Source of the DNA: Phallusia mammillata | Lineage: Eukaryota | Direction: 5' to 3' | DNA length: 64,000 bases | Assembly: GCA_965637545.1 (NCBI GenBank) | Contig: OZ281494.1 | Span: 35,092,001 to 35,156,000 of the forward strand | In this document: in pieces, positions 15,365 through 62,470 of the stretch | Layout: each line of letters begins with the position of its first letter | How positions within the stretch are numbered: position 1 is the stretch's first letter | Program-made: the position numbers and the translations under genes | Notes under the pieces: model-generated | What the model was told of the DNA's origin: nothing | The model's database searches: none | The model's input: only the letters and a program-made list of their open reading frames with translations

Positions 15365-15430
15365 ATTCTATTTGAATAAGGAACTGAAGATGTCATTTAG
15401 GCGAAATATATATCTTCACATGAAACCGTA
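15365..15430 (+). mobile_element. Spliced-leader-headed hammerhead repeat, copy A1 (core intact)
   Basis: Exact ATTCTATTTGAATAAG (15365-15380), then GAA-CTGAAGA-T-GTC/ATTTA/GGC-GAAA-TATATA-TC-TTC: complete type I hammerhead core with predicted cleavage after C15414. Confidence 0.8.
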
Positions 15431-16255
15431 AATATTCTGAAGAGACAAACGAGCCAATATATTTTTTTTTAAATTACACGTTTCGACAAGTCTGTTTTCA
15501 TTTTCAAATGTAAAACCCAGGCAGCAAGTAAAACCAGTGAAAAGGCGAGAAAACATGGGTTAAATAATTTGCGACATGACCTCTAATGTTAAAATCTGTT
15601 TCGCAACTTTTGCGTTAAGTCAGCTTTCTGCTAAGTTCCGTAACTTGTCAAGCAGTTCGGAAGCGTGATATATTTCAAAACACAATGAGCTTACGGTAAA
15701 CATCCGGCGTTTGGGTTTATTTACGTCATTTGGCATTAACTAGATTAATTATGTTTCTATAAAACATAGGCACGTTGTATATGCTATTAGATTTGAGGCG
15801 GGATAAACCACCGGATTAAATGTGTTTTACTTAATTTGCAACTAACTGGTGCAAAATATCCTGTATACAAATAAGCGACACCTGCCAAAACGTTGTGTAA
15901 GGGAATGACTATATGCGGTCGCCTTGAAAGCTTGAAAAAGATATCACTTGAAATCGTTGGGCTAAATATAACACAACATAGTTTAAAACCGTGTTTCTTA
16001 TTGATTTCTTATTGAGTTGTAGTTGTTTTTGATGATAAGTTTTATATTTAACATTTTGGTCACTAAAAAATATCAAAAGTTGTAATAAATGTGGTAACAC
16101 TAAATACAAAATGGCAGGTGCCTTTATTCTTGAAAATGTCTGTACTTTGCCTTTACTATGAACTAAAACGAAAGGAAAAACATAAAATCGTAATGTACGT
16201 GATGGAAATTCATGTGTTTATCGCGCACTGTACTAGTCGCATTCAGTGTTATTTA

Positions 16256-16301
16256 CCATGATGAATTCGACCTGTATAGGACGTCGAAACGTCGGAATAA
16301 A
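16256..16301 (+). ncRNA. Degenerate minimal hammerhead motif, family B
   Basis: CC-ATGATGA..GAC-CTGTATAGGAC-GTC-GAAA-CG-TC-GG followed by AATAAA; 5' core altered; shares CCTGTATAxGACGTC with 44330-44345. Confidence 0.5.
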
Positions 16302-19300
16302 ATTACATTTGCCAGAAGAGCTATGTAAACTTGATATTATGCCGGGCAGCAATACCTTATTATACGCAATGTACGTGCTAGTTTTTTGTTGAAGTCGTCG
16401 TGACACTTTAGGTGTTTTTGTCAGTTCTCTGCCAGCTACCAGAGTTCGTGCATCTCAAACAGTAGGCCTCAACTTAATGGATAAAAGGCGTTGAACCTAA
16501 ATATGGACCCGCAAACTTCGTATGAAAGATGAAAATCACCATCAGTAGTTTACAAGACTGTCACGTTTTTTTGCTGCTGATTTTGTCGAAAATTTGATGG
16601 TAAATAGACGAGACGTTATGCAAGGAAAGATTTCTGCTTACTGCTTGGCACAGTGGGAAATGTTTTCCCGATAAAACTGCGTTTTAAGGAAAAGTCCAAC
16701 CTGTTTTTGTCGCGTAAAAATGAGTTGACATTTTTTTTCACAACATAAACATTGTTTACACTTTTCTATGAGATAAATTGGAACACTATGCTCTTTGTGG
16801 TTACTAAATGTTGTAGTATATTTTAAGAATTGTGACTAAAACAATCACAAACGGTTTTGCACAGACAATAGCTTTGGGATATCTAAAAATACAGAAATGG
16901 ACAAACATTTTCGCGCTGCCCAAGGGTTAAGTATTGTATTGTGGACCCGCCTTTAACGAAATACTAATGTTTGGTGCATACAATTTTACTACAACACAAT
17001 AGTCAACATGACGCTAATGTTGTAAGAAAGTGGAGTAGTTTTACAGTAAAAAAGTGACTAGATATAATAATGGTCAATGATACCCAAATTTCACTCATTT
17101 TGTGGAGTTTAGATAAGTAAGTAATTCGGCGTGAACCATTGTTTGCCCGCACCATGGATAAAACTGGTGACCATTTCCAGTGTTAGGAAGGCTTGTGAAC
17201 CAAAAAACTAGCAACCGGGGTTTAAGTTAAGAAAAGGCGTGGGTTAAAAACTAATTAACAGGCTTACTCGAATAATCCAAATTTAAATCCGCCTCAGGAA
17301 TGCATTAACGATCATAACTTTACCAGAAATACTAAAAAATTAAACTGTTTGTCTTGCACGGCCGCCACAGTTGTTTACAAATCTCAAACAAAAGTTTACA
17401 CTTCACGGATGAAGCTTCGCAAAAAGTAAACAACAACACAGCGAGGTTGGGCTTCGAAAAATTTCCCGCTACTCCGCTGCCGGTATTTGTTGAGCCCTTC
17501 AGCGCATGGAGAGCGGTTTTCCGGCCAAATATCACGCCTGCTTCCAGGAGCTGGCACTGGGAGAAGCGAAACTTTCTGTGAAATTACGGCGCAAATCGGC
17601 CTAACGCGCCCGCAACCGGACAGGAACGTGCCATTATTTTATGTAGGTCGTATTGAGATATCATCTCCCCACGGTAGGAAATGGTGCCGACGTTATCTTT
17701 GGCTAATTTTGCCGTGAATCAGGTATCCAATTGCCGCGGCGCGGAGCAACGGGCCCGATGTCTTATCGTCGCAATACTATTTTACACGCTGTATTACAAG
17801 CAGATGATGATAAAGCACCCAAGCAACAGTTAGGGGAACCGATCACACATAAGATTGAATGCATATTGAAGCTAAAGGTAAACTTTCTAATGCTCAATGC
17901 GACGAACTGCGGTTCATGTAAAAAGGAGATTGGATTGTAAAATGAAACCCTAAATTTGCTCGGCAACAGCGACTGTTGAAACATTTCTCCAATATGTATT
18001 TACACTATACAAGCTCGCTTGCGGTTTGTTTTTTGTTAGGCTTATTATTAAGTCCTGATTTCGCAATTCTAGGTACTTGTAACTGATAAATAAACTGGCC
18101 AATAGACAATAGTTGTTAAAAACGACATGCTAACTCCTGAAACGTTCCGATAGTGATATTGCGGTTAAGGACTAGCTTGCGTTTTACCATAACCGTTTTT
18201 CAGATAATAATACGTCTGCTCCATTTGTAGAAACTTTTCATTTTGATTATTGTAAAAATAAACAACGTAATTTGTAGATAGGTTTTGTTTTATTTTTTAA
18301 CAATTATATAACAATTATTTTATTGCTTTTTTGTATAAGAATTATTGTGGCTTTGGCGTTTGTTGCATGCGCAAAATTAAAACTCTTACGGAAACAATAT
18401 TCACGAGAAGAACTTTTCAAAAGAATCCACATCAAGATATTTACCTCAATTCGAGTTTTAGGTTAAAGTTTCAGCAAATTTCAACAAATACACGGTGTTC
18501 AATCACAAATACACGCCGAATGTTATGTGGAAATGTCATCAGGTTTCCTGCATTATTTATGCGTATTGTAAGTGCTACGACCTCTGATTCATATGTCAGA
18601 ATTCTGCAGTGATTATGGTGTGAAATCGACATAGCATTGTGATAAAGGGCTCATTGTTGCATAACTATAAAGCCACCTTTGCAGGTTTTTAAGCAAAATT
18701 GTCGTTTAAGTTGGGGGTGCCGATGCCACCTCATAGGATTTTCAAGCGTACCGCTAAAAATTCTTCTTTTTGCATACTCGTCTTACGTTTGAGGGCAGTG
18801 GCAGTGGAGTCACAAATTGATTTCGAAAAAAATTTTGGCAACAAATCAAAAACTGTGTAAACCAAAGTTGTAGAGCTTAATGACCATAAACGGGATTCCT
18901 TTATAAAACCACAAAGCCTTATTTTCTACCTGTTTTTTTTTTGTTACCAGTCCCAGCCATCACATTAGTAAGTTATAAAATGTAGAACACTTTAAGCCAA
19001 TCAGTGGAAAACAGTTAAACAAGAAGTTAGGCGAGAGAAAGAAATTTGTACTTCCACCCCAGTTTAATCTTACAAGATATATTTTCACCCTTGCATTACT
19101 CAATAAACTAAAATAACGACAATAAAAAAACTTTAACTTAAAATTCCTTATCGTGCAAAAACTGACAACGTTATCAATTGTTAAATATACTTTGCACGTT
19201 TTAAGCGTGAGTACATGCCTTGTATTTGAGGTAACCTTGCGTAAAAAACGTGCGACAAGGTGTCTCTTTTATACCTAAATGTCGTCCATGCGCTTACGCA

Positions 19301-22300
19301 ATGCATGTAGCGCAATAATGTTTATTTTATTAACGGCCTTACCCAATAATGCCGGGGCTTCCCAGCCAAACCCGCACACCTTTAATTAAATCGAGAAAAT
19401 CATTTGCAGGATTATTGCGATGTATTACGTTAAACAACCATAAGCTGACAATTAAATTTAAACAAATGTTTGATTCAAGCAAACACTTAACCGTTGTTTT
19501 GAAGGTTTTTGTACATTGGATGTTCGATGAATGTTTGAATCAAGTTTAACGGATTATCTTAACTGTATAATTGAATAAAACAGAATTTTTTAATACGCTA
19601 CACCCGGTTAACCAGATTAAATTAGAAAGTAGTTGAATAAAACATTATGACTCGAAATTAAAACAAAATTTGACCCAAAGTTGAAGTTTGAAAATTAATA
19701 TTTTTTTCTGCTTTGTGTCTTTGCCACAGCTCGAGAAGCGAAATGGTGTGTTGCTCTTGGCAAAAACAGAAACTAATTGCGCGATTTAAAATGGCTGTCC
19801 AAATTTCTCAGTTAGTACCAATAACACCAGTTTGAGCGCATAAGATTCGCTTGATAACCTGCAATATAAGTAACGACAATAGAAATATAAAAGTGTATAA
19901 ACTGTTGCTGATAGACATAATAAACTGAATAATTCTAATCAGGAAAATAACGGCCTAAATAGACTGAAAAGGCGACATGCTTTATTAATCAAACGTTTCG
20001 ATTAACGCTAATGATGTCATTAGGATTTGCCGAAACGTTTGATTTATAAAGCATGTCGCTTTTTGCGTCTATTTAGGCCGTTTTTTTTCTTTTTATGAAC
20101 AGATCTGTGTAAGGTTCTGATTCTGACTAACACTTTTTTGGGAAAAAGTGCATCAAGAATAATGTTAAGCGACCTAGTAAACAATGGGTTTTTGATTTTT
20201 ACGGCACAAAAAAGTTATTTTTCTCTACGTGGTTGTGAAATGCGTAGAAGCTTAATCATGACAAGGGCCGGATACACATGGGTCGGGATCGTCACGTCTA
20301 AATCGTGACGTCACACAGGTAGGCGAGGGCGGTTCCTGGAAGTGCTCCGTAATTGTGCCACGACTGAACGATCGTGTCGTTACTAAGGCGGGCGCCGGAA
20401 AAACTCTCCGGTTTGGAACAAACGTGGTTAGAATTTGGCGCAAGTTTAATGCCATCGGCTGGGATTTTTGAAATACGGTCGCACGTAATGCAGCCTGTCG
20501 AGTATTTGACACGTTTTTGAAATAAAATAAACACAAGAAAAATGCTTTTCATGCTGATCAAGCAAAACGCACTTTAGTGCTGGTGTTAAAATAGCCACCG
20601 TAAGTTTTAAATAGGATATCTCATTTACAGTGAATTTCTAAAAATACAGGCACAGCACATTTTGCTATATTTCGCTTCTGCATGTAAATACAGAATTTTG
20701 TTGACTGAAAAGAATCGTGAATTTCAAATGGGGCCATTATGGGCTCATATGTACAGAAAATTTCCTAAAAATACATTTTATGAAATGTCAACACGCACAT
20801 ATTTTGATAGTAAAACAAAGATTTTTGTTGACTCAAAACAAACGTTCAACAATACGTATAGTCTTGGAAACCACTCTGATCTATACTTGTCCCTATTTTA
20901 AAGATCAGAACATTCAGAAACTAAACATTCGGTCAGAGGTTGGCACAGAGTGGCGAAAAAATTATTCATTGCTAAAAATCGTTCGGGTACTTTTCCACTG
21001 AAAAGTTTCTATCTTACCGAGCGGCAGCATTCGCCAAATATGGAAATCTAGGTTGGATGAAGCTAAATTCGTTTTTACCTAATCAGTTCTATTTATAAAT
21101 GCGGTCACGCCTAATTAGTGTGGATACAAGCTGTCTTAGTTTGCAGCAGCCCATTGTCTTGAAGGTGTGTGATAAACCATTGTTACAACCATTTTTATTA
21201 CAATTTTTCGATGAGAATTCTGTGATCGCGGGTCTGCATGTCCGTTTCAGGGCTGATCCCAGTATGAATGTGTTCATCTTGGCTACTTTCATAAAATATA
21301 CATCTAATGTCCAGTAACATTTCAGCCTTTTGCAATTCCTAATAGTATTTTGGAACGAAACACAATATGGTTGTTGAATTTGTGAAACTTCCCTAAGATA
21401 CACTCTTCTCATAAGCAAAAAATATTTTTGTGGCATAAAATTGGTTGTGTGTGACGTAGTCGTGTTAAAGATACTACTTACAACCGGAGGCGTTGATTTT
21501 TCATTTTGTCGAAGAGAAAATAAAACGCGACGTCAGCTTTCTGTGTTTTTGTTGTGTTAGAGCGCGACAAAATGCTTTGTGTATAACGATGCCATATACA
21601 AGGGCACAAGCAAAACTTTAAACCAAAACCGTTATTCTGCAACAGTGCGAAAATGTGCTCTTTGCCAATTGTTTTCCATAAAACGCGTGTTTGTGCCTAA
21701 ATTTTGGAAAATCATAATTCAAAACACCTGAGATAGATACGCGAAATACATCAAATATTCAATCATATGTGTCAAAAACTCAAAACATGATTCAACAAGA
21801 TTTCCTGTAATCTTCAGGCTTCCTCAATTTACACCCAAATCACAACGAAGACTAATTTTTATTACTTTCGATTAACGCTAGCGGTTTTTACTCGCTTTTG
21901 TGAATTTGGTGTCAATTTGTATTGTGGGTTGGCGGCCAGTTAAGACCGTCAATTAAAGTCTCACTTATAATGTTGTAAGCCTGGTAGAAACATAAAGCCG
22001 GCGCCAACGATGATGAATTGATTAGACAAGAGAAAATAAAGAAAAAAGGCGGCGGCGTTTTTCTTTTTTTCGGTTCGCTCTCTCGTATTGAAGTAAAAAT
22101 CCCACGTTTCTGCGATAAAGTTTCGAGGTGATTTTAGGGTATATGAGAAGGCAGCATGGGAATTTGCTCGCGCAGATCTGTTAAGCAGTGCAGGGGGAGG
22201 TTGATGCCGTAGTTGGCCAAATAAAGTGCTTTAATTTGCTAAAATGAGTCAAATGAAATCGTGAACTTGAAAAATGTTTCGTACAAGTTTTGTTTTAGAT

Positions 22301-22430
22301 TGAAGAAAATATACAAGTTTAATTTCATTAAAATTTGGTATCGGTCAAAAATAGCTTTTATAATCATTGTCTGTGTTATCCTGTAGCAATTTAAAACTAA
22401 TTTATTGGCATTTAATATTGAAAACCGATC

Positions 22431-25400
22431 ATGGTCATCCAGCAACCACCAACCAACAGCTTCTTTCCTGGTCGCGCCAGCCTTGATTATTCAGCGGGAA
22501 ATGGGCATTCCATTCTAGGCGACACGGCACCACGATTTACCGGGGTCTACACTGCGCAGTCAAGCTGCACGGCTCTGGTTTCGCCGCCAAGATTGTGTCC
22601 ACAAGCTCCGGTTACACCGGTGGAGAACACAAACCGATACACACCAGGAATACTTGGAAGATACTCTACAGTGGTAACTACTCAATAACTTTTCGTGTGT
22701 AATTTAATTTAGGTTTATGCCTTACGTACATGACTTAAAAACCAAAATATTCTGTATCTAAATCATTGCAGAGTTTGAATGATAAAAAAAGTTTTAGGGT
22801 GATTTTTTAAACTTCTTTCGACTCGTCAAATTTATTTTTTTCAAAAAACGTGAATTTAAACGGTTTTAAAAAGCATTGATACAAAGCATCGACATTTGAA
22901 ATAGTCGCTGGTTAAGCGCATAGGGTAAATTGACGTATGCGATATGTCTCAGATTATAGAGTACCAGTTTTTTGACAGCACCTAAGACTTTTATTTGGTA
23001 CAAATGATAACCGAGGTGTTATTTTAATAAGTTTGAAATTACACTTTTAAACTAACTCGCACCTATATTAGCCCGCTACCGTCCGAAAGTCGCTGCATTT
23101 CGCAATTAGAAACAACAAGGGATTGAGACGGCTCAGTGACGGACGATCCCTTCTTGTCCGATAATTGCCACTGGACGTGTTTTGACAGCGGATTTAGCCC
23201 AACGACGAATCGCTTTCTAAATGTCGCACGAAGCTCCCTCAAGCGTAGATTAAGCTACCCCACTTAAGGGCTGACCAACTAAATAGGAATATTCACCATT
23301 TAAATAGGTGATAAATAACAAAAATGCAAACGTAAAGTCAAACAATGCTTGGTGATAAATTAAATTAACAATTCATTTTTGAATTATACAAGAAACTGAT
23401 AACAATACGTCAGAACACAGCAACAATTGTGATGGAAATGTTTTTTTCTTAATTGCGCATTTTAGTCGTTCATGCGGGGTTTACCTCACTGCTTTGCACA
23501 AAATAATTCTTTCGTTGTTTGTCGAGTTTTGTTCGTATTTCCTCAAAAACATACTGTTCGTAACATCAAGAAAAATCTACTCATTCCGGTTTTAAAGGGT
23601 TTGGTCTGTATCATCTAAAAATTTGTATTTCCTCTTTAGAGTCCTCCAGTGGACGGAAAACCTGAAGTGGGTGAAATGTGGTATGATGGTTATTTACCAA
23701 CAACGAGAAGTTACTATTCCTACAGCGGCTACGGGTGCCAGGCGAGGTAAGTTGACTCGACGCTCTTGTTCGACGTTTTACCAAATCAACTGCTGACGTT
23801 ACCCCCTAGACGCCGCAAAAAACAAGAAACTGAATAAACAGCCATTTTTGGGCAATAAGAAACATGTTTGTGCAAAAAAAACTAAATTTAAACAAATGAA
23901 TTTTTACTCCTTCCCATTTTCACACACTTTAATTTAACGGTTTCATTTGTGTTCAAGTCCGCTTTTGACAAATAGTGACTCATTTAAAAATGACAATATT
24001 CCTGTACTTAAACCAGTGCATATAGCCTATCAATCCAACCTCTTAACGAAATCTGATCTATTTGTAAAGCTAGGTGGTATACGTTATTTCACAAAAACGT
24101 TCAAATTCGTTTCATTCGATTACATTACATTCGGGTTGAGCATTCTGTTTTAATCGGAGTAAAAACAAAAGTCTATTTTAATACGACGCCATTTTGATGC
24201 TACCTTAAATCGCCAGCAATTAGGCTACAGTCGATCAGCGGCAAGCGGTTATTTAGGTTTAACACTCGCGCGGTGAAGGTCGTGTGTTCGGGCCAGGGTG
24301 GGGCCAACGACAACAAGACTATCGCTTGTCTCAGACCTCGCTACGTCCGTGCAAGAGACTGTGTGCAATTGCGCATTGCCCAAATACGCAAGCCTGCTAA
24401 TGCGCGAGCTCACAAGCACAGTAGGGTATTGTTTTGTTGTCATCATGAATCAAGTCAATCTGGATTTGACGTCTTTGTTTGTTGCCGTGTCCAGAATTTC
24501 GTGCATGGCCTCGAGCGTTATGACGACACACATGAGCGCCGCGCGGACGCGCCACTGGGTGTCTTTGCTTCCCGGCGTCGATTCCGCTATTTCGGCCACC
24601 GGTTCGGCGTCATATCGAATGTTATTGATTGACGCGTTATTGTTTTGTTTGCGGTATCGGTGCGTCTTCAACATAAGTGCCATGCGTCTCAAGCAACGCT
24701 CCGCTCATAAACGCACTAATGTAATAGATACAAGTCACTACCTCATGGTTCATTATCCGAATGTTAAATGGTCTGACTTTGTTAATTTATCTTTAGATTG
24801 AACTCTCACCTATTTACTGAACCTAATTAAGGATAAGAAACACAAATGTAATAGCACGATTGGAGTAAAAAAATCGGTTGCGGTAGGGATTTAATCCTGA
24901 TGAATTTATCGTAAGCCTGCCCCCTCCCAGATGACACGGCCGCAAAGTTTCCGTATCCGTAGATATAACTAATCATACTTAATCTCAGATTTGCACCGAC
25001 CTCCATGAACGACCCTGGGCACCGTAAAAATGCCACCCGCGAGTCGACGAGCACTTTGAAAGCGTGGTTGCAGGAACATAGCAAGAATCCATATCCGAGC
25101 AAAGGAGAAAAGGTTATGTTGGCTGTCGTGTCAAAGATGACTCTGACCCAGGTAAATGGCTCGGTAATAAAAAGCTTCAAAAAAGAATTCAAATAACCTA
25201 AGTTGTTTGCTCAGAATATCAAATAAAAACTTTAAATTCTTGTAGGGTAATGTAAAATTTTTATGTAAAATAAGTTTTAGTTTTGGTGCTAATATTCGCA
25301 TTTCGTCATTGGGCCGTAGCGTAAACGATGCGAGTAAAACTTTTTCCGAAACCTATCTATCTTTCACGGCGAACTAGGTTGCTGCGGTATTGTGATCGAA

Positions 25401-30339: not shown

Positions 30340-30512
30340 AAAAATCCATTGAAATTGTGGGCTGTTGCGTCATAACGCCATCACACAATCACGTTGCCAG
30401 AGGTCGGTTGCTAACTTCGATGAGCACATGGTGGAAATGCGGGACTGATTGCGAGTTTGGCGAAAATTGCGTCATTCGTTTCATTGCAAGGTTAAAGCGA
30501 GGAAAATTTAAC
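30340..30512 (+). promoter_or_regulatory. Probable promoter/5' leader of HSPA9 (and possibly of the whole trio)
   Basis: Relatively GC/CpG-rich block upstream of HSPA9 with two TTGCGTCAT motifs (30365-30373, 30467-30475), a GTAAGC donor at 30513 and acceptors at 30835/30842 ahead of the ATG at 30891. Confidence 0.45.
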
Positions 30513-30890
30513 GTAAGCGTATTCGAACATCACAAAAGTGTCGTTCAAGATAATTGTTGTTTCTTTTCTTTGCGTAGTAAATTTTGTTTTGAAAAATAAA
30601 ATAAAATTGTGACATACTTTTGGGTGGGAATAGTTTTGTACTAGTTTTTGATATTTTTTAATAGTTATGCTTGTCTAATTTAGCTTTTAGCTGTAAGTTT
30701 AAATATTAAATGTTTTAACGGTTCAGTTTTTGCAAATATATTCTGTACATTGAAGTATATGCAGAATAAAAAAACTTAAAAAGCTATTTTGTTCATTAAA
30801 TCAAATTAGGTTTTTCACTTTTCATTTGTTTTCAGATTTCAGGTTGTAAAACTAATTTATATCAAACAATATTAACTCAAAAACTGCACA

Positions 30891-32966
30891 ATGTTTTCAT
30901 CAGTTAGTCGAACAATATATCAACACCAAAAGAAGGTTTACCAAAACCTTTTAAAACGAAACACTCATGGAAAAGCGGCAAGTCTTCAAAGAAACCAAAG
31001 ACTTTCAGCAATGTGTAACCAATTCCTAACTCGGTCGTATGCCTCCGATGCCATCCGAGGAGCAGTTGTCGGTATTGATTTGGGCACCACAAATTCCTGT
31101 GTGGCTGTTATGGAGGGAAAGCAGGCAAAAGTTTTAGAAAATGCCGAAGGATCCAGAACCACTCCATCAGCCATTGCATTCACAGCTGAAGGAGAACGCT
31201 TGGCTGGAACTCCTGCTCGACGACAAGCTGTTACCAACCCAGGAAACACGTTTTATGCCACAAAGCGTTTAATCGGAAGACGCTTTGATGATGCAGAGAT
31301 TCAAAAAGAACTAAAAACGTCCACTTTTAAAATTGTAAAAGCCACAAATGGTGATGCATGGGTCGAGGGCACTGATGGAAAAAGATACTCTCCATCGCAG
31401 ATTGGTGCATTTGTGCTCACTAAAATGAAGGAAACTGCTGAAAACTATCTGAACCAGCCAGTGAAAAATGCTGTCATCACGGTGCCTGCATACTTTAATG
31501 ACTCTCAGCGTCAAGCCACTAAAGATGCTGGACAAATTTCAGGGCTTAATGTGCTTCGCGTTATTAATGAACCAACTGCTGCTGCTCTTGCTTATGGATT
31601 GGACAAAACTGATGATAAAATTATTGCTGTGTATGATTTGGGTGGCGGAACCTTTGATATTTCCTTGCTTGAAATTCAGAAAGGAGTTTTTGAAGTAAAA
31701 TCCACAAATGGTGATACCTTGCTCGGTGGAGAGGACTTCGATAACACCATTCTTTCGTACTTGGTTAAGCAGTTTCTGAAGGAGCAAGGCATTGATCTTA
31801 AGAAAGATAAAATGGCAATGCAAAGAGTTAAGGAGGCTGCAGAAAAGGCCAAGATGGAACTTTCATCATCTCTTCAAACTGATATTAATCTGCCGTACTT
31901 GACCATGGATGCAAGTGGACCAAAACACATGAACATTAAACTCTCAAGGTCCCAACTTGAACAACTTGTTGGAGATCTTATTAAGCGCACAATCAAGCCT
32001 TGTGAAAAAGCCATACAGGATGCTGAGGTGTCTAAGAGTGACATTGGAGAAATTCTTCTTGTTGGGGGAATGACAAGAATGCCAAAAGTACAAGAGACAG
32101 TTCAAAGTGTGTTTGGAAAAGCTCCGAGCAAATCAGTAAACCCAGATGAGGCTGTAGCTATGGGGGCTGCTATCCAGGGTGGTGTTCTAGCTGGCAATGT
32201 TACTGACGTGCTTTTGCTTGATGTAACTCCACTGTCACTAGGAATCGAAACTCTTGGTGGAGTATTCACTAAGTTGATCGAGCGCAACACAACTATCCCC
32301 ACAAAGAAGAGCCAGGTGTTTAGCACAGCTGCCGACGGACAAACCCAGGTGGAAATCAAAGTTCATCAAGGTGAACGTGAAATGGCTTTGGACAACAAAC
32401 TTCTCGGACAATTCCAGTTGGTTGGAATCCCTCCCGCGCCTCGTGGCGTGCCACAAGTTGAGGTCACTTTCGATATTGATGCAAACGGTATTGTTAATGT
32501 TTCTGCAAGGGATAAGGGAACCGGACGTGAACAACAAATTGTCATCCAGTCTTCCGGAGGACTTAGCAAAGATGAAATTGAGAACATGGTAAAGAAAGCT
32601 GCAGAGTATGCGGAAGAAGACAAGAAACGCAAAGAGAAGGTTGAAATCGTCAACCAAGCTGAGAGTGTCATCCATGACACTGAGAGCAAGATGGAAGAGT
32701 TTAAAGATCAACTTCCCAAAGAAGAGTGCGACCAGATTAAAGAAGAGATCACCAAGCTCCAAGAAATCCTTGCCGAGAAGGATGCCAAGGAGGTTGAGGA
32801 GATTCGCCAAGCGTTCTCCAATCTTCAACAGAAGAGCCTAAAACTTTTCGAAATGGCATACAAAAAGATGGCCGCAGAGAAGGAGTCTTCCGGAGGCAGC
32901 TCTAGCAGCTCTTCAGAAGAGCCCAAGAGTGAGGACACAGAAGAACAGAAGAAAAAAGAACAATAA
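30891..32966 (+). CDS. HSPA9: Mitochondrial Hsp70 (mortalin/GRP75), 691 aa, intronless CDS
   Basis: Single ORF with a basic, acid-free N-terminal presequence ending RSYAS; Hsp70 signatures [46 protein letters not shown]; mitochondrial-type motifs ([16 protein letters not shown]) and no C-terminal EEVD/KDEL. Confidence 0.97.
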
Positions 32967-48499: not shown

Positions 48500-48812
48500 C
48501 AGTGGTTCTCAACCTGTGGTTCGCTTACCACTAGTGTTACGACGGACGTTTTTAAGATGGTACACGGGTAGCTTTCTTTCGTACTTAATTAAATTCGGAT
48601 CCAAAATTGTAACTTAACTGACCCAACTGATCATCTTTGGTTTGGGGCGAAGCTCGTGTTTTGGACATTCTTCTGAAATTGCTCAAAAATCTACTAGCCT
48701 GGTCAAGAAGAACAGGGCTATATCTTATGGTTTACCCACTTAAACCGCGTTTGGCTGGAACGCAGCGATAGAAAAATTCATCAGTTGGTACGTATAAGGT
48801 TGAGAACCACTG
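48500..48812. mobile_element. hAT (Charlie-type) MITE
   Basis: CAGTGGTTCTCAACCT ... AGGTTGAGAACCACTG termini; TSD decayed. Confidence 0.8.
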
Positions 48813-51800: not shown

Positions 51801-53778
51801 GTCTCCATTGCTAAACTATGGCCTTTATTGAATGACAACTATCAAAAAGTGCAATTGTTTTGTCCTGTTTGTGATGTCACATGCTGTCTTTGGATGATCG
51901 TTATGCGCAATTTTGCATAACTAGCTAAAATCCTGCAATCAACTTTCGTTTTTATGAAATACACATTTAGCCTTAAGGACCGCGAGCCCTCGAAATAATG
52001 GCAAAGGGACCGTTTTGAAAAAATATGAAAAAGTTTGGGAACCGCTGTTTTAGATCAATTCATTTCTGTACATTTTGCCAGGTTAACCTTTCAGTGAGTT
52101 TGGAAAATGTTAGCTACAAACTGCTTGAAATTAAAGCCTCCAATTTGTCATATTGCTAAAAGTGGGTGTTGGTTATTTTGTAAAACCATTTAAAATCAAT
52201 TGTTTTTGTCGCCTTTGTAATGAAATATCTACGAAATCGGGTATACAATAGTGACCAACTGTTTTATGTTGGGTAGTCAGTAGATTTTAAGCAGCAAACG
52301 TCTAATAGAAACCTAAGTCACCATAAGCAAACAGGAAAAAACAGTCTACGTAAATATAGAAATCTATTGTTAGCATTTGGGACTTAAACTTCATTTTTCA
52401 GTCAAAACATAAAAACAACAAAATTACCAAATAATCTAAGACGACCCATACTCCAGCTTCTTATAGTTAAGCTCACAATGCAAGTTGCTCAAATAGACTT
52501 TCTCTATATCAGAGTTCTACGAAGCGAGTGTTTATAACCGACTTCACGATCTTGTCGGCTATCTCGACCCTCTATTAGGGAATTAATAGTCACGTTGATG
52601 TCCCTGAATATTCGAGAAACCCGATAATGAAACATTCACAGACGAAAGCGATTGTGTGGTTTGCCGATTACAGATTTAAACGCAGCAATTTTAACACCTT
52701 CGTCGGATTATGAAATAATCTAAACGGCCGCTTAAAACGTTTTGAGATTCGGATTTGTTTAAAATTACTTTTAGTTTTTAACAAATTTTAACTTGTTTGA
52801 TCTGAAAGCAAATTAAAAGGTTATTTGTCAACAGAAATGAATAGTGTTTTCTTAACTGTTTTTTTACTAAATGCGTTTTTTTTAACTTGGCTTATTTTTT
52901 GCAGGGTTGTACTTCCGGCCACTGCTCAAGTCACTTGAAGAAACGGAGGGTTGTCGTAGGTGAAAAGGTAATCACATTTAATTTTTTGTGGACGCGCCGC
53001 CAAACTGCCTGTACACAAGCTTCCGGGGCTTTAAGTTTATTTTGAGATATTTAAGTTCAACGCTAACCCAAAGAGTGCTGTGACCTCTACATCGCAAAGG
53101 TCACGCTGCACCCGGACACGAAACGATCACAACTTCGGCGTAGACGAAACGCAATTCGCATTTTAGCGTCTACGAGAAGCAATTAAGGACAGGCAAGAGT
53201 GTTTTTCGCCACCGACAACTCGGCAATGTGCGGTCGTCTGTGAGGTGTGTGTCTGTAATTACCCGCTACCAAATAGCCGCAAAGACTGGCACTGGCAAGC
53301 TAACAGCCGTCGCAGCAAGTTTTCCGCGACCTGTCGTGATTTTCACAGCCTGGCACTTTATTTTTGACCACTTTAAAGCCGCCGCTGCTTGCACGGGATT
53401 CGTAATTATCACCGCGAGGTTACTCGAGTTCAAATCGGTGACAACGAGAAAACAACAAACTCATGATTGCAACTTGTCACTACAGTTTAAGGCTAAAAAA
53501 CGTTCGGTGTTTTCCTGATTTTAACAACACGCGGGAATTTACAACCAAGTCAGCACTTTGCCTGGTTTCCCACGTGACTGTTTGAGCCAATAGGAAAGCG
53601 GCAAACGTAAGTGCTTTGATCGGAATTGATTTGCAGTCGTTTCACACCGATTCACACTACAAATTCGGCGTCTATGGTGAACATGTTTGAGTAAGTGTGA
53701 TTGTATTGAATTTATTTCAAATGTGGAAAAGAGTTCCCAAGGAAGCAGGATCAGTCGATTTCTTAAAAAAATCTTTGA

Positions 53779-53829
53779 GAAAATATATTTCACTTATTGG
53801 CATCGTCAGTTTCTTATTCGTATAGAATC
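53779..53829 (-). mobile_element. Spliced-leader-headed hammerhead repeat, copy A4
   Basis: Minus strand reads ATTCTATACGAATAAG (14/16 to SL) AAA CTGACGA T GCCCAATAAGT GAAA TATAT TT. Confidence 0.7.
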
Positions 53830-56219
53830 ATAAGTATGCTGCCTGTCAGAGGGTCAGATACTGGCTACTGCTCAATCCATTGATTCTATATTTAATTTAT
53901 TGTCAGACAAGTTAAAGATTTCTTGAGAAAGAAAAAAACGCTTTGCCAAATTGATGTGCAGAAGTTCACTTTACCACAGTTTCTTCATTTGTGTGAATAA
54001 TTTTAGATTCTAGCTGCCTGCCTTTTAATATTGGGCCTTTATAAAAATAATTGATCCTACATGGGGCAAATTAAGTCCAGCTTTGCTGAAATCTGACCTA
54101 AAACCGCCTTAAGGTGACCTGCTTTCAACCCTGGGTTGCGGAAAGACAGTCTGTATACATAAACTTATGTTGCAAAGCCCCGTCTAATTATGTCTCAACC
54201 CTGACTCTCGGCTCATGGGATAACATCTCAACACAAACATGCCCGGCTAGAGCGAGGATATTTGATAAGAAACATCGAAATAGCAATTTGCGACCCCCCT
54301 CTCACGATGGGTTCGGGCACTAATCGAAAATTTGGCAGTCATTAGACCAACGTGCAAGCCGCGAATTATGATAGAAAACGGAGATAGCTATCTGTTTCGG
54401 GGTGTGCGGCTTTCGCGGAATGTTGCAGGGCTAGTGCTGCCTTTACCACCACTGTAATGCCTTTAAACCAATGCTGCGGATCAAATTTTCCCACAGGCAG
54501 TGGATTGTTATAAACTTATGACTTGTTTCTTTGTTTATTTATGGCAAAAACTTAATGCAAATTATTCGACATTCGCCTGAAGTTAAGCTTTACCAAATAA
54601 GGCTCTGTTCTCATGCAAGCTTGTGCAAGATTTCGTAAGCCAACGTTTTCTACACCGTTAATAGTTTTTGAACAAGTCACATAGATGTTCTTGTAACGTT
54701 GTGCACGATCGTTAAGTCGCATGTAACAATAATACGTTTAACATAATGTGTCCTAAACTATTTGTTTTGTATTGTGGTTCTGTCGCAAATGACTTACATT
54801 TTTGAAGCTTAATATTAATCTAAGCAAAACGAAGGCCCAAAAATGCCCAAGTAGATTTACTCTATTATTATTTCCACGACAGCATGAAGTGTAATTCCAC
54901 CTAGTTTTGCATTCAAGTGCTTTTTAGGGACAGTTTGAAACACTTTACAGACGGTCAAGACTAAATGCAGTGGGTTTGTATAAGCTTTTAGATTACATCA
55001 CAACTTGACACACCCACAGTGTATTACGAAACTCGTTCGTTCCAATATTCTTACTTGCATAAGCACGTAGCCCACCAAAAACCATGTCAATGCCACCAGT
55101 TACACAAACAACCAACCATACACCATTTCGGAACCAACAAAGCTAAGCGATTATTTTCCCTAATAAGGTTAAACAACCAGAAGGGGAATCACTATCAGAA
55201 GCACATCGGGGACCAATCACCAATTCTTGACCACATAACCCTAAAAATACCACCTGAAGCACTTGTTTTTGTATCAAACCGTTTTCGGAATTACAATTTA
55301 AAGCAACGCGATAGAGACCTATTTTAATCCACTAATCAACATTCAGAAACTATGTGGTCCTTTAATTTTGACAGCTTTACTCTTATCAAGCCGAGCCCAA
55401 AAATTTAATAAAAAGTCAATCTTGATCGAGTTGACAGACGATGTGTAACAGACCAAAAGAAAGCACGTTTTCTGGGGTTAATTATGCAATTGATGATTCA
55501 GATTGATGATTCAGTAGCGAAAAAGTTTTAAAACAAAATATCAAATTGGTTTTTAAAACCCGATTAACCCGTAAACCGAAGTCACTGCGTGGTTGCAAAA
55601 ACAAACGTTAGGTTTTTTGGGCGCCCCAACCTTGTATGATATCTGCTTTATGTAACAAAAATTTTAAAGAAAATGTTCGCTCTGATTTAAAACGTTAAAA
55701 AAGGTTTATTCTGTGACTTTCAAGATTATGTAATTCTGCACATAGCGTTGTTAATGCATTGCCACGTGGTCCGTTAAAATTTTACCAACCAACAACAAAA
55801 GATTTTGTTTGTTTTTGCAAGGCGTATACTATAAACATTAGCTTGCTATCAAATGTTCACCTTAACGTTTCCCACCTAAACCGACTTTACCAAAACGCTT
55901 AACGCGCGTTGTTGACTAATATTCTAAGGTTATTTTGTGAATGTTGGAAGAGCAATAAACTGGTGCAGCCAGGCATAACATCAACTTTACAATATAGCTC
56001 TCTCTAGTGGCTAATATGTTTTTTGTGAGAAGGTTTTGAAATCTTGCTTGGAAATTGAATGTTGTTGATACAGATAAAAGCGGGAAAAAGTGTCACTACC
56101 AAGACTCTAAATAAGACGTATAAATGTTACTACCAAGAAAAATTTCCTAGATGAACTATAGCACACGTTTACCACTATGATATGTCAACAGCAATCCGGT
56201 ATTTACCAATTATAAATAG

Positions 56220-56490
56220 ATTCTGTTTTAATAAGATACTGAAGATGCCTATCACTTAGGTGAAATATATATGTCTAAATAAAACGGTGGACGACTTCAG
56301 ACATGTCAAAGTTTTCAGTCTGTTATTACATGCGACTGTTGTCTCCATCCCACGTACTGAGTCTCTGGTGACTCGTGATTTATAATATACTACACACAGT
56401 TTACCAACTATGGACTATTTTTTAAACAACAACCCACAACGTACACAAACCAATTCAACGCATATTTTGACACATTTTACACAACAGCTA
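56220..56490 (+). mobile_element. Spliced-leader-headed hammerhead repeat, copy A2 (longest colinear copy)
   Basis: ATTCTGTTTTAATAAG (14/16 to SL) ATA CTGAAGA T GCCTA-TCACT-TAGGT GAAA TATATATG TC; continues AAAACGGTGGACGACTTCAG...GAGTCTCTGGTGACTC...CTACACACAGTTTA, shared with the 62.2-62.5 kb copy. Confidence 0.75.
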
Positions 56491-57947
56491 AAGTCCACAG
56501 CCGCCTTATGGAATGTCAAAGGTCGTATCGAGGTCACAACCAATCATTGACCCCCGATAATGCCAAAATTAACCGCTCCTAGCAGTAAAAGGCCAAATAT
56601 CTCTTGTTAGCCCGTTTCCTATTGGATTCTAATGACCTTGTAATTTGCTATTTAACACACACTTACTTTGGGGACGTTCCAATTTCCACGCTGGGGCTCT
56701 TTGACCCTGGCGACCCTGTAATTTGAAAATAAACTTTTGTGAGAATTACAATCACTCTGGCGCCGGCGTCTGCCCTCAGTGGGTTGCGTATTAGGGGCTT
56801 ACCCCTTTGTTGCACTAGGCAAGTGTTTGCCAGTGACATTTTTTTCTTTGCTAGTTTTTTTTTATCTTAAGTATAACTGACTGTCGTAAACATTTAGTCT
56901 AAGTGGCGTTCTGTAACACAGCCTTTTTCAGTTTTTAAGACATTTTACCAGTAGTAAAATAGAGGGTTAACAAATTTGCCATTCAACTGGTATGATGCTA
57001 AACAAAATACTAGTTGTTTTTCAAAAACTTGTATTTTTGCTAACGTTTCGCCCACCAGAACGGCAGGTACAAGTTCTTGAAAAACAACTACTATTTTGTT
57101 TATCATCACACCAGTTGAATGACACGTTTGTTAAACATGCAACCTGGTGGACGAAACGCTTGTTCCAAATATAGGTTTGGTGGAAAGTTTAAAACTTGTT
57201 GCTTTATCTGACTATAGATTATGTTAATGTTGAAACTACAAACAAATTCCTGAATGTTGTGACAGATCTGGGTCAGATTTTATTGTAATTAGCCTAACAC
57301 GTGTTTACATGATGTAAACTTCTCAGCAACGGTGATTTGTATCTTTCCTAAAACGTGCGAAGTGTAAACAACATACACAAACTTCAATGGGCGTCCTAAG
57401 CGTGTTAATGGTTGTAAAGTGCTTTAAGTTCGCTCTAAGTTACACCGCATCATGCAAAGTTAACTTTAACGGGGCTGGCACGTTTCGGGCGTCGCTAAAA
57501 TTAGCTTAAAATCTATTTGATAATCGCTGGTGGATCTGTAAACACCCTGCAAGCCCTGTGCCTCACATAAAGCACATCAAGAACGAGCGTGTCACTGTAT
57601 CGGATGACCCGAAGCTTGTTTATCCGACGCTGGCAATTTATTTTCGGCACCCGGACCATCAGGCTTCTATTAGTGGGCTTCGCGGGGCGATGGTTGTTCG
57701 TGATTAGTGCCACGGCTCAAGTTTGATGCCTGACCTTGTCCTGACACTGCGATCATCCTTTTCCAGTGCGCTTTCGTGGTTTTATCGCACCGCTCATGTG
57801 GTTTTTGAACTCGGCCAATCTAAAAATGGTGCGAAAAGCGACTTCGGCTGATTTTTTGGGACAAGCGGTTTATGCGGTTGGAACGATTTTAGTACATTTA
57901 CCGTGTCAGCAGCGGTACGATTTACTGCGTCACAGCGTCTGTTGTGG

Positions 57948-60900
57948 TCAGACAGCTGGAAATAAATTGGATGCGTTTATAATTGCTTTTGATTGGACGT
58001 TAATGGGAAAATGCTTGCTGGGTTATACATAGAGCCTGTATTTAAAAAAAAGTGCAAAAAGTTTTTTATGGCTAAACTTTCATTTATAAACGCAATTAGG
58101 CTGACTACATAAACCATAGTCTGAAACAACTGTGGAAACGTATTTAGATCGGAACACTATACACGGACTTGAAAAGTAATTTAATCATAAACATTACTGC
58201 CAAGGTGCTGGTGTATATAGAATACATCGTTCAGACGTTTCAACCTACACTGATGATGACAACAGAGATTGTCTATTTGGGCCGTTATTTTCACCATTAA
58301 GATCGAGTTTGTTAAACAAACTTAACTGGTTGAACTGTTGTACAGAAAAGTCAGCCTAATTGCAAGAATGTTGAAGGTTTGTTTTGATCTTATCCAAACT
58401 CTAATACAACTCGTCATATCAACGTGCAGTGTGAAACAACATAGGTAACAAAAAAACATCCTGCGTCAAAGCATCGACTCACCCGTATAGACGTTCTGGT
58501 TGACTGACGGCGACAGTGACGTCATAATGTTGTGCTTAGCTGTGACGTCACCGAGGGAGGTTGGGTGGTGGGGGTTGATAGCGATGTGGGGCCGTAATTC
58601 AGTGTTTACCCCGTCCTGGGGGTAGTAGGGACTTGCGTACATCGAAGCTGGGCTCGCATTGGTAGCTTGGCCGTAATACGGAGCACCGGGGCCGCTTTGT
58701 CCCGGTCGGTGGGGGTGGAAGAGAGCTCTCGAATTGGGCGGACTGACCGTCGCCGAACTGGGTGACGTGGCAGCTTCGAGGGGAACCCCCGTGACGTCAG
58801 CGTGCTGCGTGTAATTGTTCGTCGCTTGGAGACGGTCGGTGACGTCACGGTGAAAGTAGGGTCCTGCGGCCACTAGATGGGGCGGAGGGGGCAATCGCTC
58901 CCCTTGTTGGTAATAGTCAGTGTTTGCGTTGTTGCGACCGTAGCTGGGAGCTTGATACGGCGACGTTGAGTCGATGGGTCGGACCCCGCTCGACGGGTTG
59001 GGGCTGTTCCCGGGGATTTCACGACCCCTGGGTACGGGATACATCGCGTTGGGTAAGTAGTGTTCCGCCCCACGTTGGTAAGCCTCGGCCCCGCAAGCGT
59101 ACTGACGCTGATATTCGGCTGAAGCTGGTGAACCGGTCACTATCTCATGCACCTCACCCCGCCCTTCGGATGACTCAGCGCCGCTAGCGGAATGTCCGAT
59201 GCTGCACGACTCTGAACTCGGCGCCATGACATTCGGGTAACCGTGCTCGGACCAGGGTTGGTGACTCACCGGGTAGTGGTACTCGGGAGCCGGTCGAGCT
59301 CCTATCTGTTCCCCTTCTCGAACTAAACCGGGGCTCACAATAGGGGCATGTCTTCCCAAGCTTGGTGCCGGGAAGTTATCGGAGAACTGGGCATTTGCGT
59401 TGTAACCTGGCTGTTCTACATCTCTTCCGACGTCGAGTCGTTCCTGAGGGTGCATCGTGTATCCCGGGCGCGCTTGTTCGTTTACAGGGGACCAAATAGC
59501 TCTGCTCCCAGCATCGGGGTGTCCGAAGCGGGTTTGACCGGATTCGCAGGTCATATTTACCGCCGGTTTGTATTCCGAGTCCGAAGGCGGTGGGAACGGG
59601 TGGTGGGATTTCTCGCTCGGTGCCGAGTTCGGGTCTGAAGTGAAAGAGTCAACTCGTTCGTCTTCGAATACCGAGTTGTCCTGGGAAAAGTTGGATCCCA
59701 TCTCGTTGTTGTTTGTGCTCGTCACTTCACGTTCTGCTGAGTCATCTGAGTCAGCACCTTGTTCGTTGTCTGATCTGGCGTCTGTGGGTATTAAAGACAT
59801 TAAGTTTTTTTTGTGAGACTTTCACTCTGACATGATAAATTGTCCATTACTGTTCAGTTTAAAACTCTCTGGTGAAATTGTTCTAAGGTTCGCTGGTTTA
59901 TTACTGTAAGTTTTTTCTTCGAGACATATTTTAATATTTGATGAAACATGGCTGAAATGTAGGTTTGTTTCAAAACTAAACAGTTAGAGGATTAAACAAA
60001 GTGAATAACATTTGATTACAAGCGCTAAAACAATCGCCGTGGTGATTCAAATTTCGTAGATTTACATTTTATAACTTATTAGCTTGTATTTTGATGCTGA
60101 GGAAATCTAAAACCGTTTATTTTGCACCTAAATTTTCTTGGTTTGAACTTCGTAAATTCATTTAATCCATTTGGAAAAGCGTTATTTGCTTCTTAAGTCA
60201 CATCTGTCTATCAGGCGTGGTAAAAAATCACGTAGAACGTTTTGTTTCTGACGTCACATTATCATGATTGTTACGTGGAATGACGCGGGGCGATCCATGG
60301 ACTCTCGCGATCGCGTTCTACTTTCGCTTGTAATCGACTTGTAATCTTCGCCGGATTACAAGAAAGAATCAAAACACACAGGAACGCGCGATCGCGTCGC
60401 TACTGTCACGTCACAATGCCGATGTTCGAACGGCGCCAACTGTAACATATTGCGAATCTACGTCGAACGATTTGTTTGTAAACATCGATGGCGACGCCGT
60501 GACGCTGACTTTGTGACGTCATAAAGCGGCAACGCGACTTTCGTTTAAAATACGTAAATGAGGAATTTTTGAAACAAGAATAAAATAGTTTTTTAATATG
60601 CAGTTAGGTTTAAGGGTTAATTAATTTTTTTCTGTGAAGTTATGGAAATATTTAAATTACCTAAAATTGAGGTTGTTCTGGTATTTGTTCTTTAACTTGT
60701 GGCTAAATCATCATCTGACGTAAAAAGCTAATTAGTTGCTGATATCGTTTCTCATGGTACTGTTTTTTTTAATAGAAATAATCACCAATTTACTATTAGT
60801 ATTCGAAATTACCCGTTAAGCAATAAGATTCGGAATTACCCGTATCAAGATTTTGCGAATCCTCATCGTCTCCATCTTCCTTCTTGTCGTTGGATCCGGA

Positions 60901-62190
60901 TGAGTTTTCGTTAGAGCGATTTTTCGGCACCCAAGTCATCTTGTTTTCCTTTTTCAATCTTCGCCGCGCATTTGCGAACCACGTCGACACCTGGCATAGA
61001 AATCATAATTAATACAATGCAAATATGACGTCAATATTATGACTGGTGATCCACAAGTGAAATCAGATAATGTCATCAGCAGTTGTTAAGAGTTGAAAGT
61101 CGAAATTTAATATGGAACATTATGTTCGGATCTGTTTACAAGTTTAATGATGAAAAAACCGGCCCAAATAGACTTATATCAATGATGATGGCATGAGCAG
61201 GCATGTCACTTGTTACATCTATTTGGGTCGTCATTTTCATCTTTAGACATTTACTATGTAATCAAAAACCTAGTGTATAAAACCCTTGTAGGCAATGCGA
61301 TGCCCAAAAAACTGGTGAAATATATATTCTGTGCAAACACTGTATACCGGTTGATTCTGTTTGGCCTAGGGTTCTATACACTGGATTTTTTGGATTAGGT
61401 TGGTGTAGAGCAGGGGTCCGCAAATAGTGGGTCGCGACCCAAATTTGGGTCGCGAGACCTTCCAGTCTGGGTCGCTAAATATTTTTAATTTCCCATGAAT
61501 ATAAGCATCGCATCTACAGTATTAATGAACTTCGGCTTTATTCAACCTTTTAATTATTATTGCATTGTTACAAGTGACTACGTAACTGTTACATACACCG
61601 AGCTATCTTATTAACTGATCAAGACTATAGAAGTCGAAGAAGATCTTCAGCTGGCGTCTCTTAATTTAAACCTCGAATTGATTTGTTGTGTTCTCAACAC
61701 AGAGCACACCGTTCTCAAGATAGCAACTGACATTACCATAATATCAGTCTTAGTGTTTTATTTAGTTGCTTAATTGGTATTTTCCACAAACTTACATGCT
61801 AACAAAATGCTTGGGTCGCGAGAATTTAGAGGAATTTTTTAGGGTCGCGCCAAAAAGTATTTGCGGACCCCTAGTGTAGAGAACCGTAATCACCGGAGCA
61901 CTGCGACTTTAGGGGCTGATTTCAACACTAACTGTACTTTATTTACCATGTACAATCCTACAGGCAGTCAAGCTTTTGTTCAAACTTCACTAAAGATTGA
62001 AACTTTCTCGGTTAGTTGTATGAAGTTTACCTGTGTGAGGGTCATCTTGGTAATAATGGCCAACATAATCTTTTCCCCTTTAGTCGGGTAAGGGTTTTTC
62101 TTGTGCTCTTGCAGCCAAGCCTTCAATGTGTTCGTTGATTCTCGCGTTGCATTTTTCCTTCTGACTCCATCGTTCATCTCCATGCTGTAT
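57948..62190 (-). CDS. Irx: Iroquois-class TALE homeobox transcription factor (canonical homeodomain); 5' end not resolved
   Basis: Phase-consistent exons 62031-62190 ([54 protein letters not shown]), 60840-60990 ([20 protein letters not shown]...) and 58483-59781 (acidic stretch, SRAIWSP degenerate IRO box). Candidate last exon 57948-57955 (AV*) or 51684-51745; candidate upstream exon 62673-62794. Confidence 0.92.
61411..61873. mobile_element. hAT MITE in an Irx intron
   Basis: CAGGGGTCCGCAAATA ... TATTTGCGGACCCCTA; perfect TSD GTGTAGAG; sub-terminal GGGTCGCG repeats. Confidence 0.9.
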
Positions 62191-62235
62191 CTTAAAGAAA
62201 TAATCGTGCTTTACTTGAAATTCCGTTTATATGCT

Positions 62236-62470
62236 AATTTTGACAGAATGAAAACTGAAGTCATCCACCGTTTTTCAAGATATGTATGTTTCATCTTAGT
62301 GATAGGCAACAACGGTATCTTATTCAAATAGAACCGAGTCTCTGGTGACTCGTAATTATATAAAATGCTACACACAGTTTATATTAATTTGTCCAATTTA
62401 ACCCATAACGTCCTCATAGGCATACGGGACAGTCATATTGAAAACACGTAAATATAACACGAAAAGTTAG
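62236..62470. mobile_element. Spliced-leader-headed repeat, copy A3, with 5' inversion
   Basis: 62319-62333 is the reverse complement of SL nt 2-16 (15/15). 62236-62318 matches copy A2 on the minus strand (hammerhead core mutated), while 62335-62470 matches A2 56358-56490 on the plus strand. Confidence 0.75.

Follow-up and report, generated by a model that had tools for sequence, protein, structure and literature searches.

Probable retrocopies of a trans-spliced Penelope-like RNA: a dispersed ascidian repeat that joins the spliced leader to a hammerhead-type motif

Why should a sequence matching the spliced leader (SL) of Ciona intestinalis stand at four unlinked places in 64 kb of ascidian DNA, each time three nucleotides in front of a motif that resembles a hammerhead ribozyme? 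The stretch in question, which we call the window, comprises 64,000 nucleotides of Phallusia mammillata contig OZ281494.1 (positions 35,092,001 to 35,156,000) and contains no N. An earlier note, made from the letters alone, had proposed a retrozyme-like family copied from a small, trans-spliced, self-cleaving RNA. Our analysis favours a related but different answer. The copies are probably dead-on-arrival retrocopies of the SL-trans-spliced terminal-repeat RNA of a Penelope-like retrotransposon (PLE), or of a non-autonomous derivative of one, a reading we hold with some reservation.

A search of the window for the 16-mer ATTCTATTTGAATAAG at up to two mismatches returned four sites, where 0.18 were expected by chance and none of 100 shuffles reached four, so the four sites already listed are real. 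They lie at 15365-15380 (+; copy 1, 16/16, no mismatches), 53813-53828 (-; copy 2, two mismatches), 56220-56235 (+; copy 3, two mismatches) and 62319-62334 (-; copy 4, one mismatch). The plus-strand starts first given, 15365 and 56220, were right, whereas the minus-strand starts were off by one and should read 53828 and 62334. The identification of the 16-mer as the Ciona intestinalis leader also holds, with copy 1 identical to the published sequence (PMC7986045; PMC1488885, Table 1). Three nucleotides after each SL-like site of the window comes the module CTGANGA, T, a short hairpin, GAAA and (TA)n. Both catalytic boxes, CUGANGA and GAAA, are intact in copies 1-3 and the first is mutated to CCGTTGT in copy 4, just as the earlier note had it. 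The two nucleotides directly after the 16-mer are GA, AA, AT and AT in copies 1-4, again as first described, and none has a GT donor. Likeness among the four copies begins at SL nucleotide 1 or 2, whether judged by BLAST, MAFFT or an nhmmer profile. It extends for 50-70 nt in all four and for about 105 nt between copies 3 and 4, and the nhmmer profile built from the four copies found no fifth in the window.

The family is much larger than these four. Contigs of four runs, two of DNA (X1 and X2) and two presumed to be of RNA (X9 and X17), were placed on positions 15165-15764 at 80% likeness. About 180 contigs from each DNA run landed there, and they landed only on 15365-15417. Summed depth over this head was 19,000-23,500 in X1 against 84 in the single-copy flank, and 4,650-5,600 in X2 against 23, a ratio that gives about 200-280 copies at least 80% like copy 1 and confirms the suspected high copy number. 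The body of copy 1 (15445-15544, +) reached 290-570 against 84 in X1 and at most 139 against 16-23 in X2, or about 3-7 genomic copies as judged from contig depth. Most placed contigs were 80-95% alike to copy 1, indicating a family that is not very young. No alternative letter had a share of 10% or more at any position of the copy 1 head, so that copy 1, with its perfect leader and intact motif, comes close to being the consensus of the family. The overall pattern is star-like, as if one or a few masters close to copy 1 had given a burst of copies that then decayed neutrally; under such a history, covariation is unreadable from the copies. With about 250 copies spread evenly over a genome of about 200 Mb, the density would be 30-50 times lower than that of the four copies in these 64 kb. 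The excess means either that copies of greater age, less than 80% like copy 1, outnumber our estimate several-fold, or that there is local enrichment in this gene-regulatory region.

Where the contigs stop resembling copy 1 on the 5' side is evidence for an RNA that carried the leader at its end. In each DNA run 45 contigs have loose ends before 15365, and a further 14 and 15 before 15366. The flanks of these SL-start contigs, about 60 per run, are unrelated, AT-rich and give a near-random consensus (agreement 0.42-0.44). Homology thus starts at SL nucleotide 1 or 2, as an RNA-derived family had been predicted to show. The claim that upstream flanks are unrelated stands for these contigs genome-wide and fails for copy 4, which is preceded by a segment common with copy 3 (segment X, described below).

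A sister set of contigs (16 in X1 and 11 in X2) diverges instead before 15379, into a shared consensus, CCTTTATTATGTTTTATCCTGTGGTTTTGT (agreement 0.61-0.65), followed by AG|GAACTGAAG. In this set a polypyrimidine stretch ending ...TTTTGTAG replaces the leader. At the junction the 11-16 contigs per run have ...GTGGTTTTGT+AG|GAACTG in common, and contigs of the two presumed RNA runs hold a related member, ...TTCGGTTAC+AG. As the leader and an intron both end in AG, divergence before 15379 fits an unspliced source whose acceptor lies exactly at the SL junction. The earlier note had suggested looking for a master locus in which an AG acceptor takes the place of the SL, and this set of 11-16 contigs matches it. 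We infer that the acceptor-bearing set represents the unspliced source and that its acceptor is used for trans-splicing. The window itself has no match to the acceptor consensus or to the long-form consensus. Two metagenome scans for the leader plus core were also made. One was without a match and the other returned one unrelated sequence present three times (OFFU01011009.1, OFGX01007720.1 and OFGA01003877.1), in which TATTTGAATAAG-NNN-CTGATGA..GAAA lacks the first four SL bases and has unrelated flanks; we rejected it as a chance match.

What kind of motif follows the leader? In copy 1 a minimal hammerhead can be laid out over 15381-15417 (+), with GAA as the 5' strand of helix I, CTGAAGA, an unpaired T, helix II (GTC-ATTTA-GGC), GAAA, a palindromic (TA)4, C17 and TTC as the 3' strand of helix I. 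The A15.1-U16.1 pair is present, and the predicted cleavage falls after C17, at AUAUAUAUC|UUC. A relaxed descriptor (helices I and II of at least 3 bp each, CUGANGA followed by 0-1 unpaired base, GAAA, a helix III that is closed by A-U and at least 2 bp long, and H17) matched copy 1 only in the window, and nothing in 150 simulated windows. Importance sampling put its chance rate at 0.26 per Mb of strand, or about 1.6e-5 per given 60-nt stretch, figures to be read about ten-fold more loosely as the thresholds were set after copy 1 had been seen.

Beyond the descriptor, a T stands directly after CTGANGA in all four copies and supplies the base left unpaired between positions 9 and 10.1. Copy 1 has the G10.1-C11.1 pair (GTC..GGC), which is G-U in copies 2-4; the palindrome AUAUAUAU lies directly 3' of GAA in copies 1 and 3 as helix III; and where the four copies differ by indels, these are in the loop of helix II. 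Such an extra base at 9/10.1, together with G10.1-C11.1, a palindromic helix III and a short helix I, are hallmarks of PLE minimal hammerheads (PMC4209133), and they are absent from the search descriptor of the authors who reported them (Cervera & de la Pena 2014, PMC4209133). The earlier assignment to the minimal type I motif with palindromic stem III, typical of PLEs, thus fits copy 1, and this agreement makes it very probable that the motif descends from a minimal hammerhead of the PLE type.

Descent need not mean activity. PLE minimal hammerheads are reported to show low activity in vitro (PMC4209133), and the predicted hammerhead may, like them, cleave only as a dimer or with cofactors. 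Copy 1 has a second CTGAAGA, then ..GCCAATATAT, 55 nt past its first core. Read by eye as CTGAAGAG..GCCAATATAT at 15439-15466 (+), this possible degenerate unit may be the decayed remnant of a second hammerhead in tandem with the first, an arrangement consistent with dimeric action. A conserved CUUCA that follows the (TA)n run of copy 1 (within 15385-15419, +) is complementary to the UGAAG of the catalytic box and gives a competing hairpin of 9 bp; CTTCAG is kept further downstream in copies 3 and 4. In the folding model the CUUCA/UGAAG hairpin could be an on/off switch, or could simply be the real structure.

The longer copies show how the sequences may have been inserted. Copy 3 is a long-form element, E, of about 179 nt (56220-56398, +), made up of the SL-like 16-mer, the hammerhead cores (56239-56265), a body and a 3' segment, X (56356-56403, +), that holds the hairpin GAGTC-TCTGGT-GACTC. 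Its right target-site duplication, GTTTACCAACTATG, lies at 56399-56412 (+), with its left partner at 56167-56179 or, matching less well, at 56203-56215 (shuffle p = 0.0005). The number of extra nucleotides 5' of the leader is accordingly 40 (56180-56219), if the far-left duplication is the true one, or 6. The target motif GTTTACCA(A)CTATG thus occurs twice upstream (56167-56179 and 56203-56215) and once downstream of copy 3, and its repetition may stem from duplication of local sequence or from a 'tail' of the PLE type where the element meets its 5' flank.

Copy 4 is split into two arms. The inverted arm (62241-62334, -) covers E nucleotides 1(2) to about 103, including the SL-like 16-mer and the mutated core CCGTTGT, and has 75 identities to copy 3 in 106 columns of a global alignment. 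The sense 3' arm is segment X (62335-62376, +), which abuts the inverted SL end; over 62333-62381 (+) it is identical to copy 3 (56356-56403, +) at 44 of 49 positions. In copy 3 about 35 nt separate X from the 103-nt segment upstream of it, the one that is inverted in copy 4, and at the inversion joint X opens with an 18-nt hairpin, CGAGTC-TCTGGT-GACTCG. A target-site duplication with the pattern GTTTATAT(GC)TAATTT encloses both arms (GTTTATATGCTAATTT at 62225-62240, +, and GTTTATATTAATTT at 62377-62390; shuffle p = 0.0055), its boundaries at most 3 nt from where the likeness to copy 3 stops. In its arrangement, copy 4 is a 5'-inverted insertion like those that twin priming gives.

Copies 3 and 4 share head, body and 3' end as one unit, together with a 22-nt insertion at the cleavage site. 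Both of their targets open with GTTTA, which may be microhomology to the 3' end of the RNA. Poly(A) is absent from the copies. Copies 1 and 2 have no convincing target-site duplication, just matches of 7-8 nt. Copy 2 (53760-53828, -) consists of the SL-like 16-mer, AAA and CTGACGA..GAAA (53788-53809), with helix II degraded.

These observations can be joined into one scheme. In the source elements a 3' splice acceptor, ...TTTTGTAG|GAA, would stand at the 5' edge of helix I, with three nucleotides between it and the CUGA box. In the ascidian this acceptor, lacking a paired donor, would receive the 16-nt leader, giving an RNA of the form 5'-SL-GAA-hammerhead-...-element 3' end with the junction SL|GAACUGAAGAUG.... 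Trans-splicing at the downstream terminal repeat would yield a short RNA consisting of the leader and the last 160 or so nucleotides of the element, and the long form of about 180 nt (copies 3 and 4) would keep the element 3' end needed for target-primed reverse transcription. Copying at a nicked target would then leave target-site duplications of 13-16 bp, no poly(A) and, at times, a 5' inversion. We infer that a PLE reverse transcriptase, and not that of a long interspersed nuclear element (LINE), did the copying; the link to PLEs comes from the type of motif and the position of the acceptor. The claim that the copies derive from an RNA with the leader at its 5' end has therefore fared well, given the starts at SL nucleotide 1, the acceptor set and the duplications.

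Several results weigh against this scheme. The Rfam hammerhead families gave no match at the gathering threshold over the whole window, and none even at E<=10 when these covariance models, of the Infernal type called for in the earlier note, were run on copy 1 and copy 3 alone (pieces of 141 and 151 nt). Helix II is only 3 bp long, including one G-U pair, while published PLE minimal hammerheads have 6-8 bp. The hammerhead fold of copy 1 comes out at +4.4 kcal/mol against a minimum free energy (MFE) of -8.6 kcal/mol, and the competing hairpin, which pairs UGAAGAUGU with AUAUCUUCA, hides the core with a probability of about 0.99. Free folding of six segments gave ordinary z-scores and an MFE structure that was not the hammerhead. 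With no Rfam match and this unfavourable monomer fold, the earlier claim of a self-cleaving RNA is unsupported. Mobility does not depend on cleavage, since copies 3 and 4 moved in spite of the insertion at their cleavage site. No reverse transcriptase or GIY-YIG open reading frame (ORF) was found in the window, including the interval between the head-to-head copies 2 and 3, and duplications of 13-16 bp with a twin-priming-like inversion fit a LINE reverse transcriptase equally well. On the RNA side, X9 and X17 were guessed to be RNA runs, and contigs such as theirs do not reveal where an RNA begins. The 16-mer, identical to the Ciona leader, is the putative SL of this ascidian, taken as such from the family itself.

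The alternative that draws most on these points is a retroposon of the short interspersed nuclear element (SINE) type, mobilised by a LINE and without any PLE link. Its RNA would likewise have been SL trans-spliced, and its resemblance to a hammerhead would be a matter of chance or a decayed, functionless remnant. Duplications of 13-16 bp with a twin-priming-like inversion are classic for LINE target-primed reverse transcription, and the conserved hairpin of segment X recalls the LINE 3' tails recognised by stringent reverse transcriptases. The absence of a nearby PLE ORF and of an Rfam match fits too, as does the unfavourable monomer fold. Against it stands a full descriptor match in the family consensus itself, at the low chance rate given above. 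Three features of the match are specific to PLE minimal hammerheads and superfluous to a chance match, namely the base added between 9 and 10.1, G10.1-C11.1 and a helix III that is palindromic (PMC4209133), and the acceptor lies at helix I as in the Penelope of Drosophila virilis. We consider a LINE-mobilised origin unlikely, though worth taking seriously. A different kind of accident would be the joining of an abundant small RNA, the SL-capped 5' cleavage fragment of the hammerhead (about 50 nt), to other RNAs by template switching as their reverse transcription ends, leaving bodies that are unrelated. Template switching is how U6 small nuclear RNA is picked up in U6-L1 chimeras. In X1 likeness to copy 1 ends at 15411 in 18 contigs, at 15413 in 34 and at 15417 in 19, and most contigs thus lose it next to the predicted cleavage after C15414; the 200-280 copies of the head set against about 3-7 of the copy 1 body point the same way. 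The mobile unit could also be the 50-nt cleavage fragment itself. But the loose-end consensuses past 15411, 15413 and 15417 resemble each other and copies 1-3 (..TCTTCA.., CATGTAAAT..), and to judge from this likeness most copies probably run on, with indels, into a few diverged bodies. Copies 3 and 4, moreover, share their head, body and 3' end as a unit, and a fragment ending in a 2',3'-cyclic phosphate is an unproven template. Such chimeras seem to us distinctly improbable.

Two further readings would take the leader from SL RNA genes and not from trans-splicing. An element that targets these genes, in the manner of NeSL-1, SLACS or Tx1-type LINEs, could have gained the leader by promoter fusion. 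Such a fusion would have had to fall exactly at the exon end (nucleotide 16), with no SL-intron sequence, GT donor or Sm site following. It would leave the polypyrimidine-AG acceptor of the sister set unexplained, and the flanks of the copies are unrelated, with target-site duplications of their own, all of which makes this origin very improbable. A reading as SL RNA pseudogenes or orphan SL genes can appeal to Ciona, whose SL RNA pseudogenes have been called 'rife' (PMC7986045, citing Yeats et al. 2010). An SL RNA gene has a GT donor after nucleotide 16, an Sm site (AGCUUUGG) and a 46-nt RNA (PMC7986045). At the copies both donor and Sm site are absent; the Sm motif AGCTTTGG lies near none of them, its occurrences in the window being confined to 16870 and 46637. 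What follows the leader is instead a hammerhead-type module common to hundreds of copies. We therefore rejected this reading, which is already contradicted and almost certainly wrong.

Returning to the trans-spliced PLE RNA, one can go further and suppose that an ascidian PLE has SL trans-splicing built into its life cycle. The splicing would trim host or upstream sequence, cap the RNA and alter helix I, which SL nucleotides 12-16 can extend in a subfamily consensus, and the leader in the copies (UUCUAUUU..AAG|G) could serve as an acceptor again. This extension is speculative and, in our judgement, clearly unlikely.

The genes around the copies give some context. Positions 25026-25156 (+) and 62026-62156 (-) are 75% identical and encode a TALE/Iroquois-type homeobox exon, and the window appears to lie within an Irx gene cluster. 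Copy 4 stands about 70-85 nt upstream of the second homeobox exon, on the strand of that gene. Between the Irx-like genes an uninterrupted, intronless ORF of 691 amino acids (30891-32966, +) encodes mitochondrial HSP70 (mortalin), with identities of 86-91% to Ciona intestinalis, 87% to Clavelina and 82% to Styela; identity at this level to C. intestinalis indicates an ascidian other than that species. A further ORF of 444 amino acids (58466-59800, -) stands in a GC-rich stretch (0.50 against about 0.37). It lacks a Pfam domain and nothing in Ciona matches it closely, the identity to a C. intestinalis Irx protein being 33%; a Logan contig of run DRR090687 has an ORF with 64% identity to it. This 444-residue ORF is probably the long C-terminal exon of an Irx gene. 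A contig search with the 444-residue ORF and HSP70 recovered neither, the only relative being a 1.1-kb contig of another species.

Our full-text literature search found no SL-hammerhead or SL-PLE fusion and no Ciona hammerhead, with a mention possible in Yeats et al. 2010, Vandenberghe et al. 2001 and Matsumoto et al. 2010. Each part has been described before, namely the minimal hammerheads of PLEs, the intron acceptor at helix I and the SL relicts left by retroposed RNA. What appears to be new is that they are combined, in a family that numbers hundreds of copies in a chordate relative. PLE replication has been described as unresolved, both in whether the template is sense or antisense and in why introns are retained (Arkhipova et al. 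2013, PMC3846280). If a PLE enzyme made the copies, the family would document from nature that sense RNA processed by the spliceosome can undergo reverse transcription and integration, and an acceptor abutting helix I would be common to the fly Penelope and the ascidian element. Should the SL step be integral, PLE retrotransposition would draw by preference on trans-spliced sense RNA as its template. The family is also a marker for dating and counting the retroposition of trans-spliced RNA in a chordate relative. It may further explain some of the orphan SL copies or 'pseudogenes' of ascidian genomes, which can mislead SL-gene finders.

How does the family compare with known systems? The closest likeness is to PLEs and their minimal hammerheads, with which it shares CUGANGA and GAAA, the unpaired base at 9/10.1, G10.1-C11.1, a palindromic helix III, which implies dimeric action, and a short helix I (PMC4209133; PMC8557442). 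PLEs carry hammerheads near their 3' ends, and their insertions are mostly 5'-truncated, often with inverted partners and tails of 30-40 bp, with (TA)n as a preferred target (PMC8557442). The ascidian copies are likewise mostly solitary, truncated and dispersed, with an inverted arrangement and no poly(A). In the Penelope of D. virilis the 3' end of an intron maps at the 5' end of helix I, so that spliced and unspliced RNAs differ in their hammerhead (PMC4209133), and the ascidian acceptor has the same place, 3 nt before CUGA. It differs in apparently being used for SL trans-splicing, with the spliced RNA copied back, and accordingly the ascidian copies start with the host leader at a fixed nucleotide and not at random truncation points. 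They differ further in a helix II of 3 and not 6-8 bp and in the lack of a linked reverse transcriptase or GIY-YIG ORF in the window.

Hammerheads are also found in the SINE-like retroposons Sm-alpha and Sj-alpha of schistosomes (cited in PMC2770079) and in animal non-LTR (long terminal repeat) retrozymes (PMC7229834; bioRxiv 10.64898/2026.07.22.740005). Like these, the ascidian family is short, non-autonomous and high in copy number, has a type I hammerhead and is tied to PLEs. Those systems, however, are tandem or Pol III-type and give circular RNAs, whereas the ascidian units are single, dispersed and SL-tagged. Retrozymes have at least two complete tandem hammerheads; no tandem arrays were found among our copies, and the second core of copy 1 is degenerate. 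The retrozyme identity first proposed is thus unsupported, and from its sequence the family is best seen as a PLE terminal-repeat derivative rather than a new class.

The joining of an SL exon to a retroelement has a parallel in NeSL-1, SLACS/CZAR and Tx1-type non-LTR elements, which sit inside SL RNA genes and take the SL from their target. The ascidian copies differ in being dispersed, in having target-site duplications of their own and in having a putative acceptor-bearing source. Slamovits and Keeling are said to have described, in 2008, relict SLs in dinoflagellate genes that came from the recycling of mRNA by retroposition. There, as we propose here, a trans-spliced RNA was reverse-transcribed and integrated, and its SL became fixed in genomic DNA. 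The dinoflagellate cases concern protein-coding mRNAs in a protist; the ascidian one would be a non-coding, transposon-derived family of hundreds of copies in a chordate relative.

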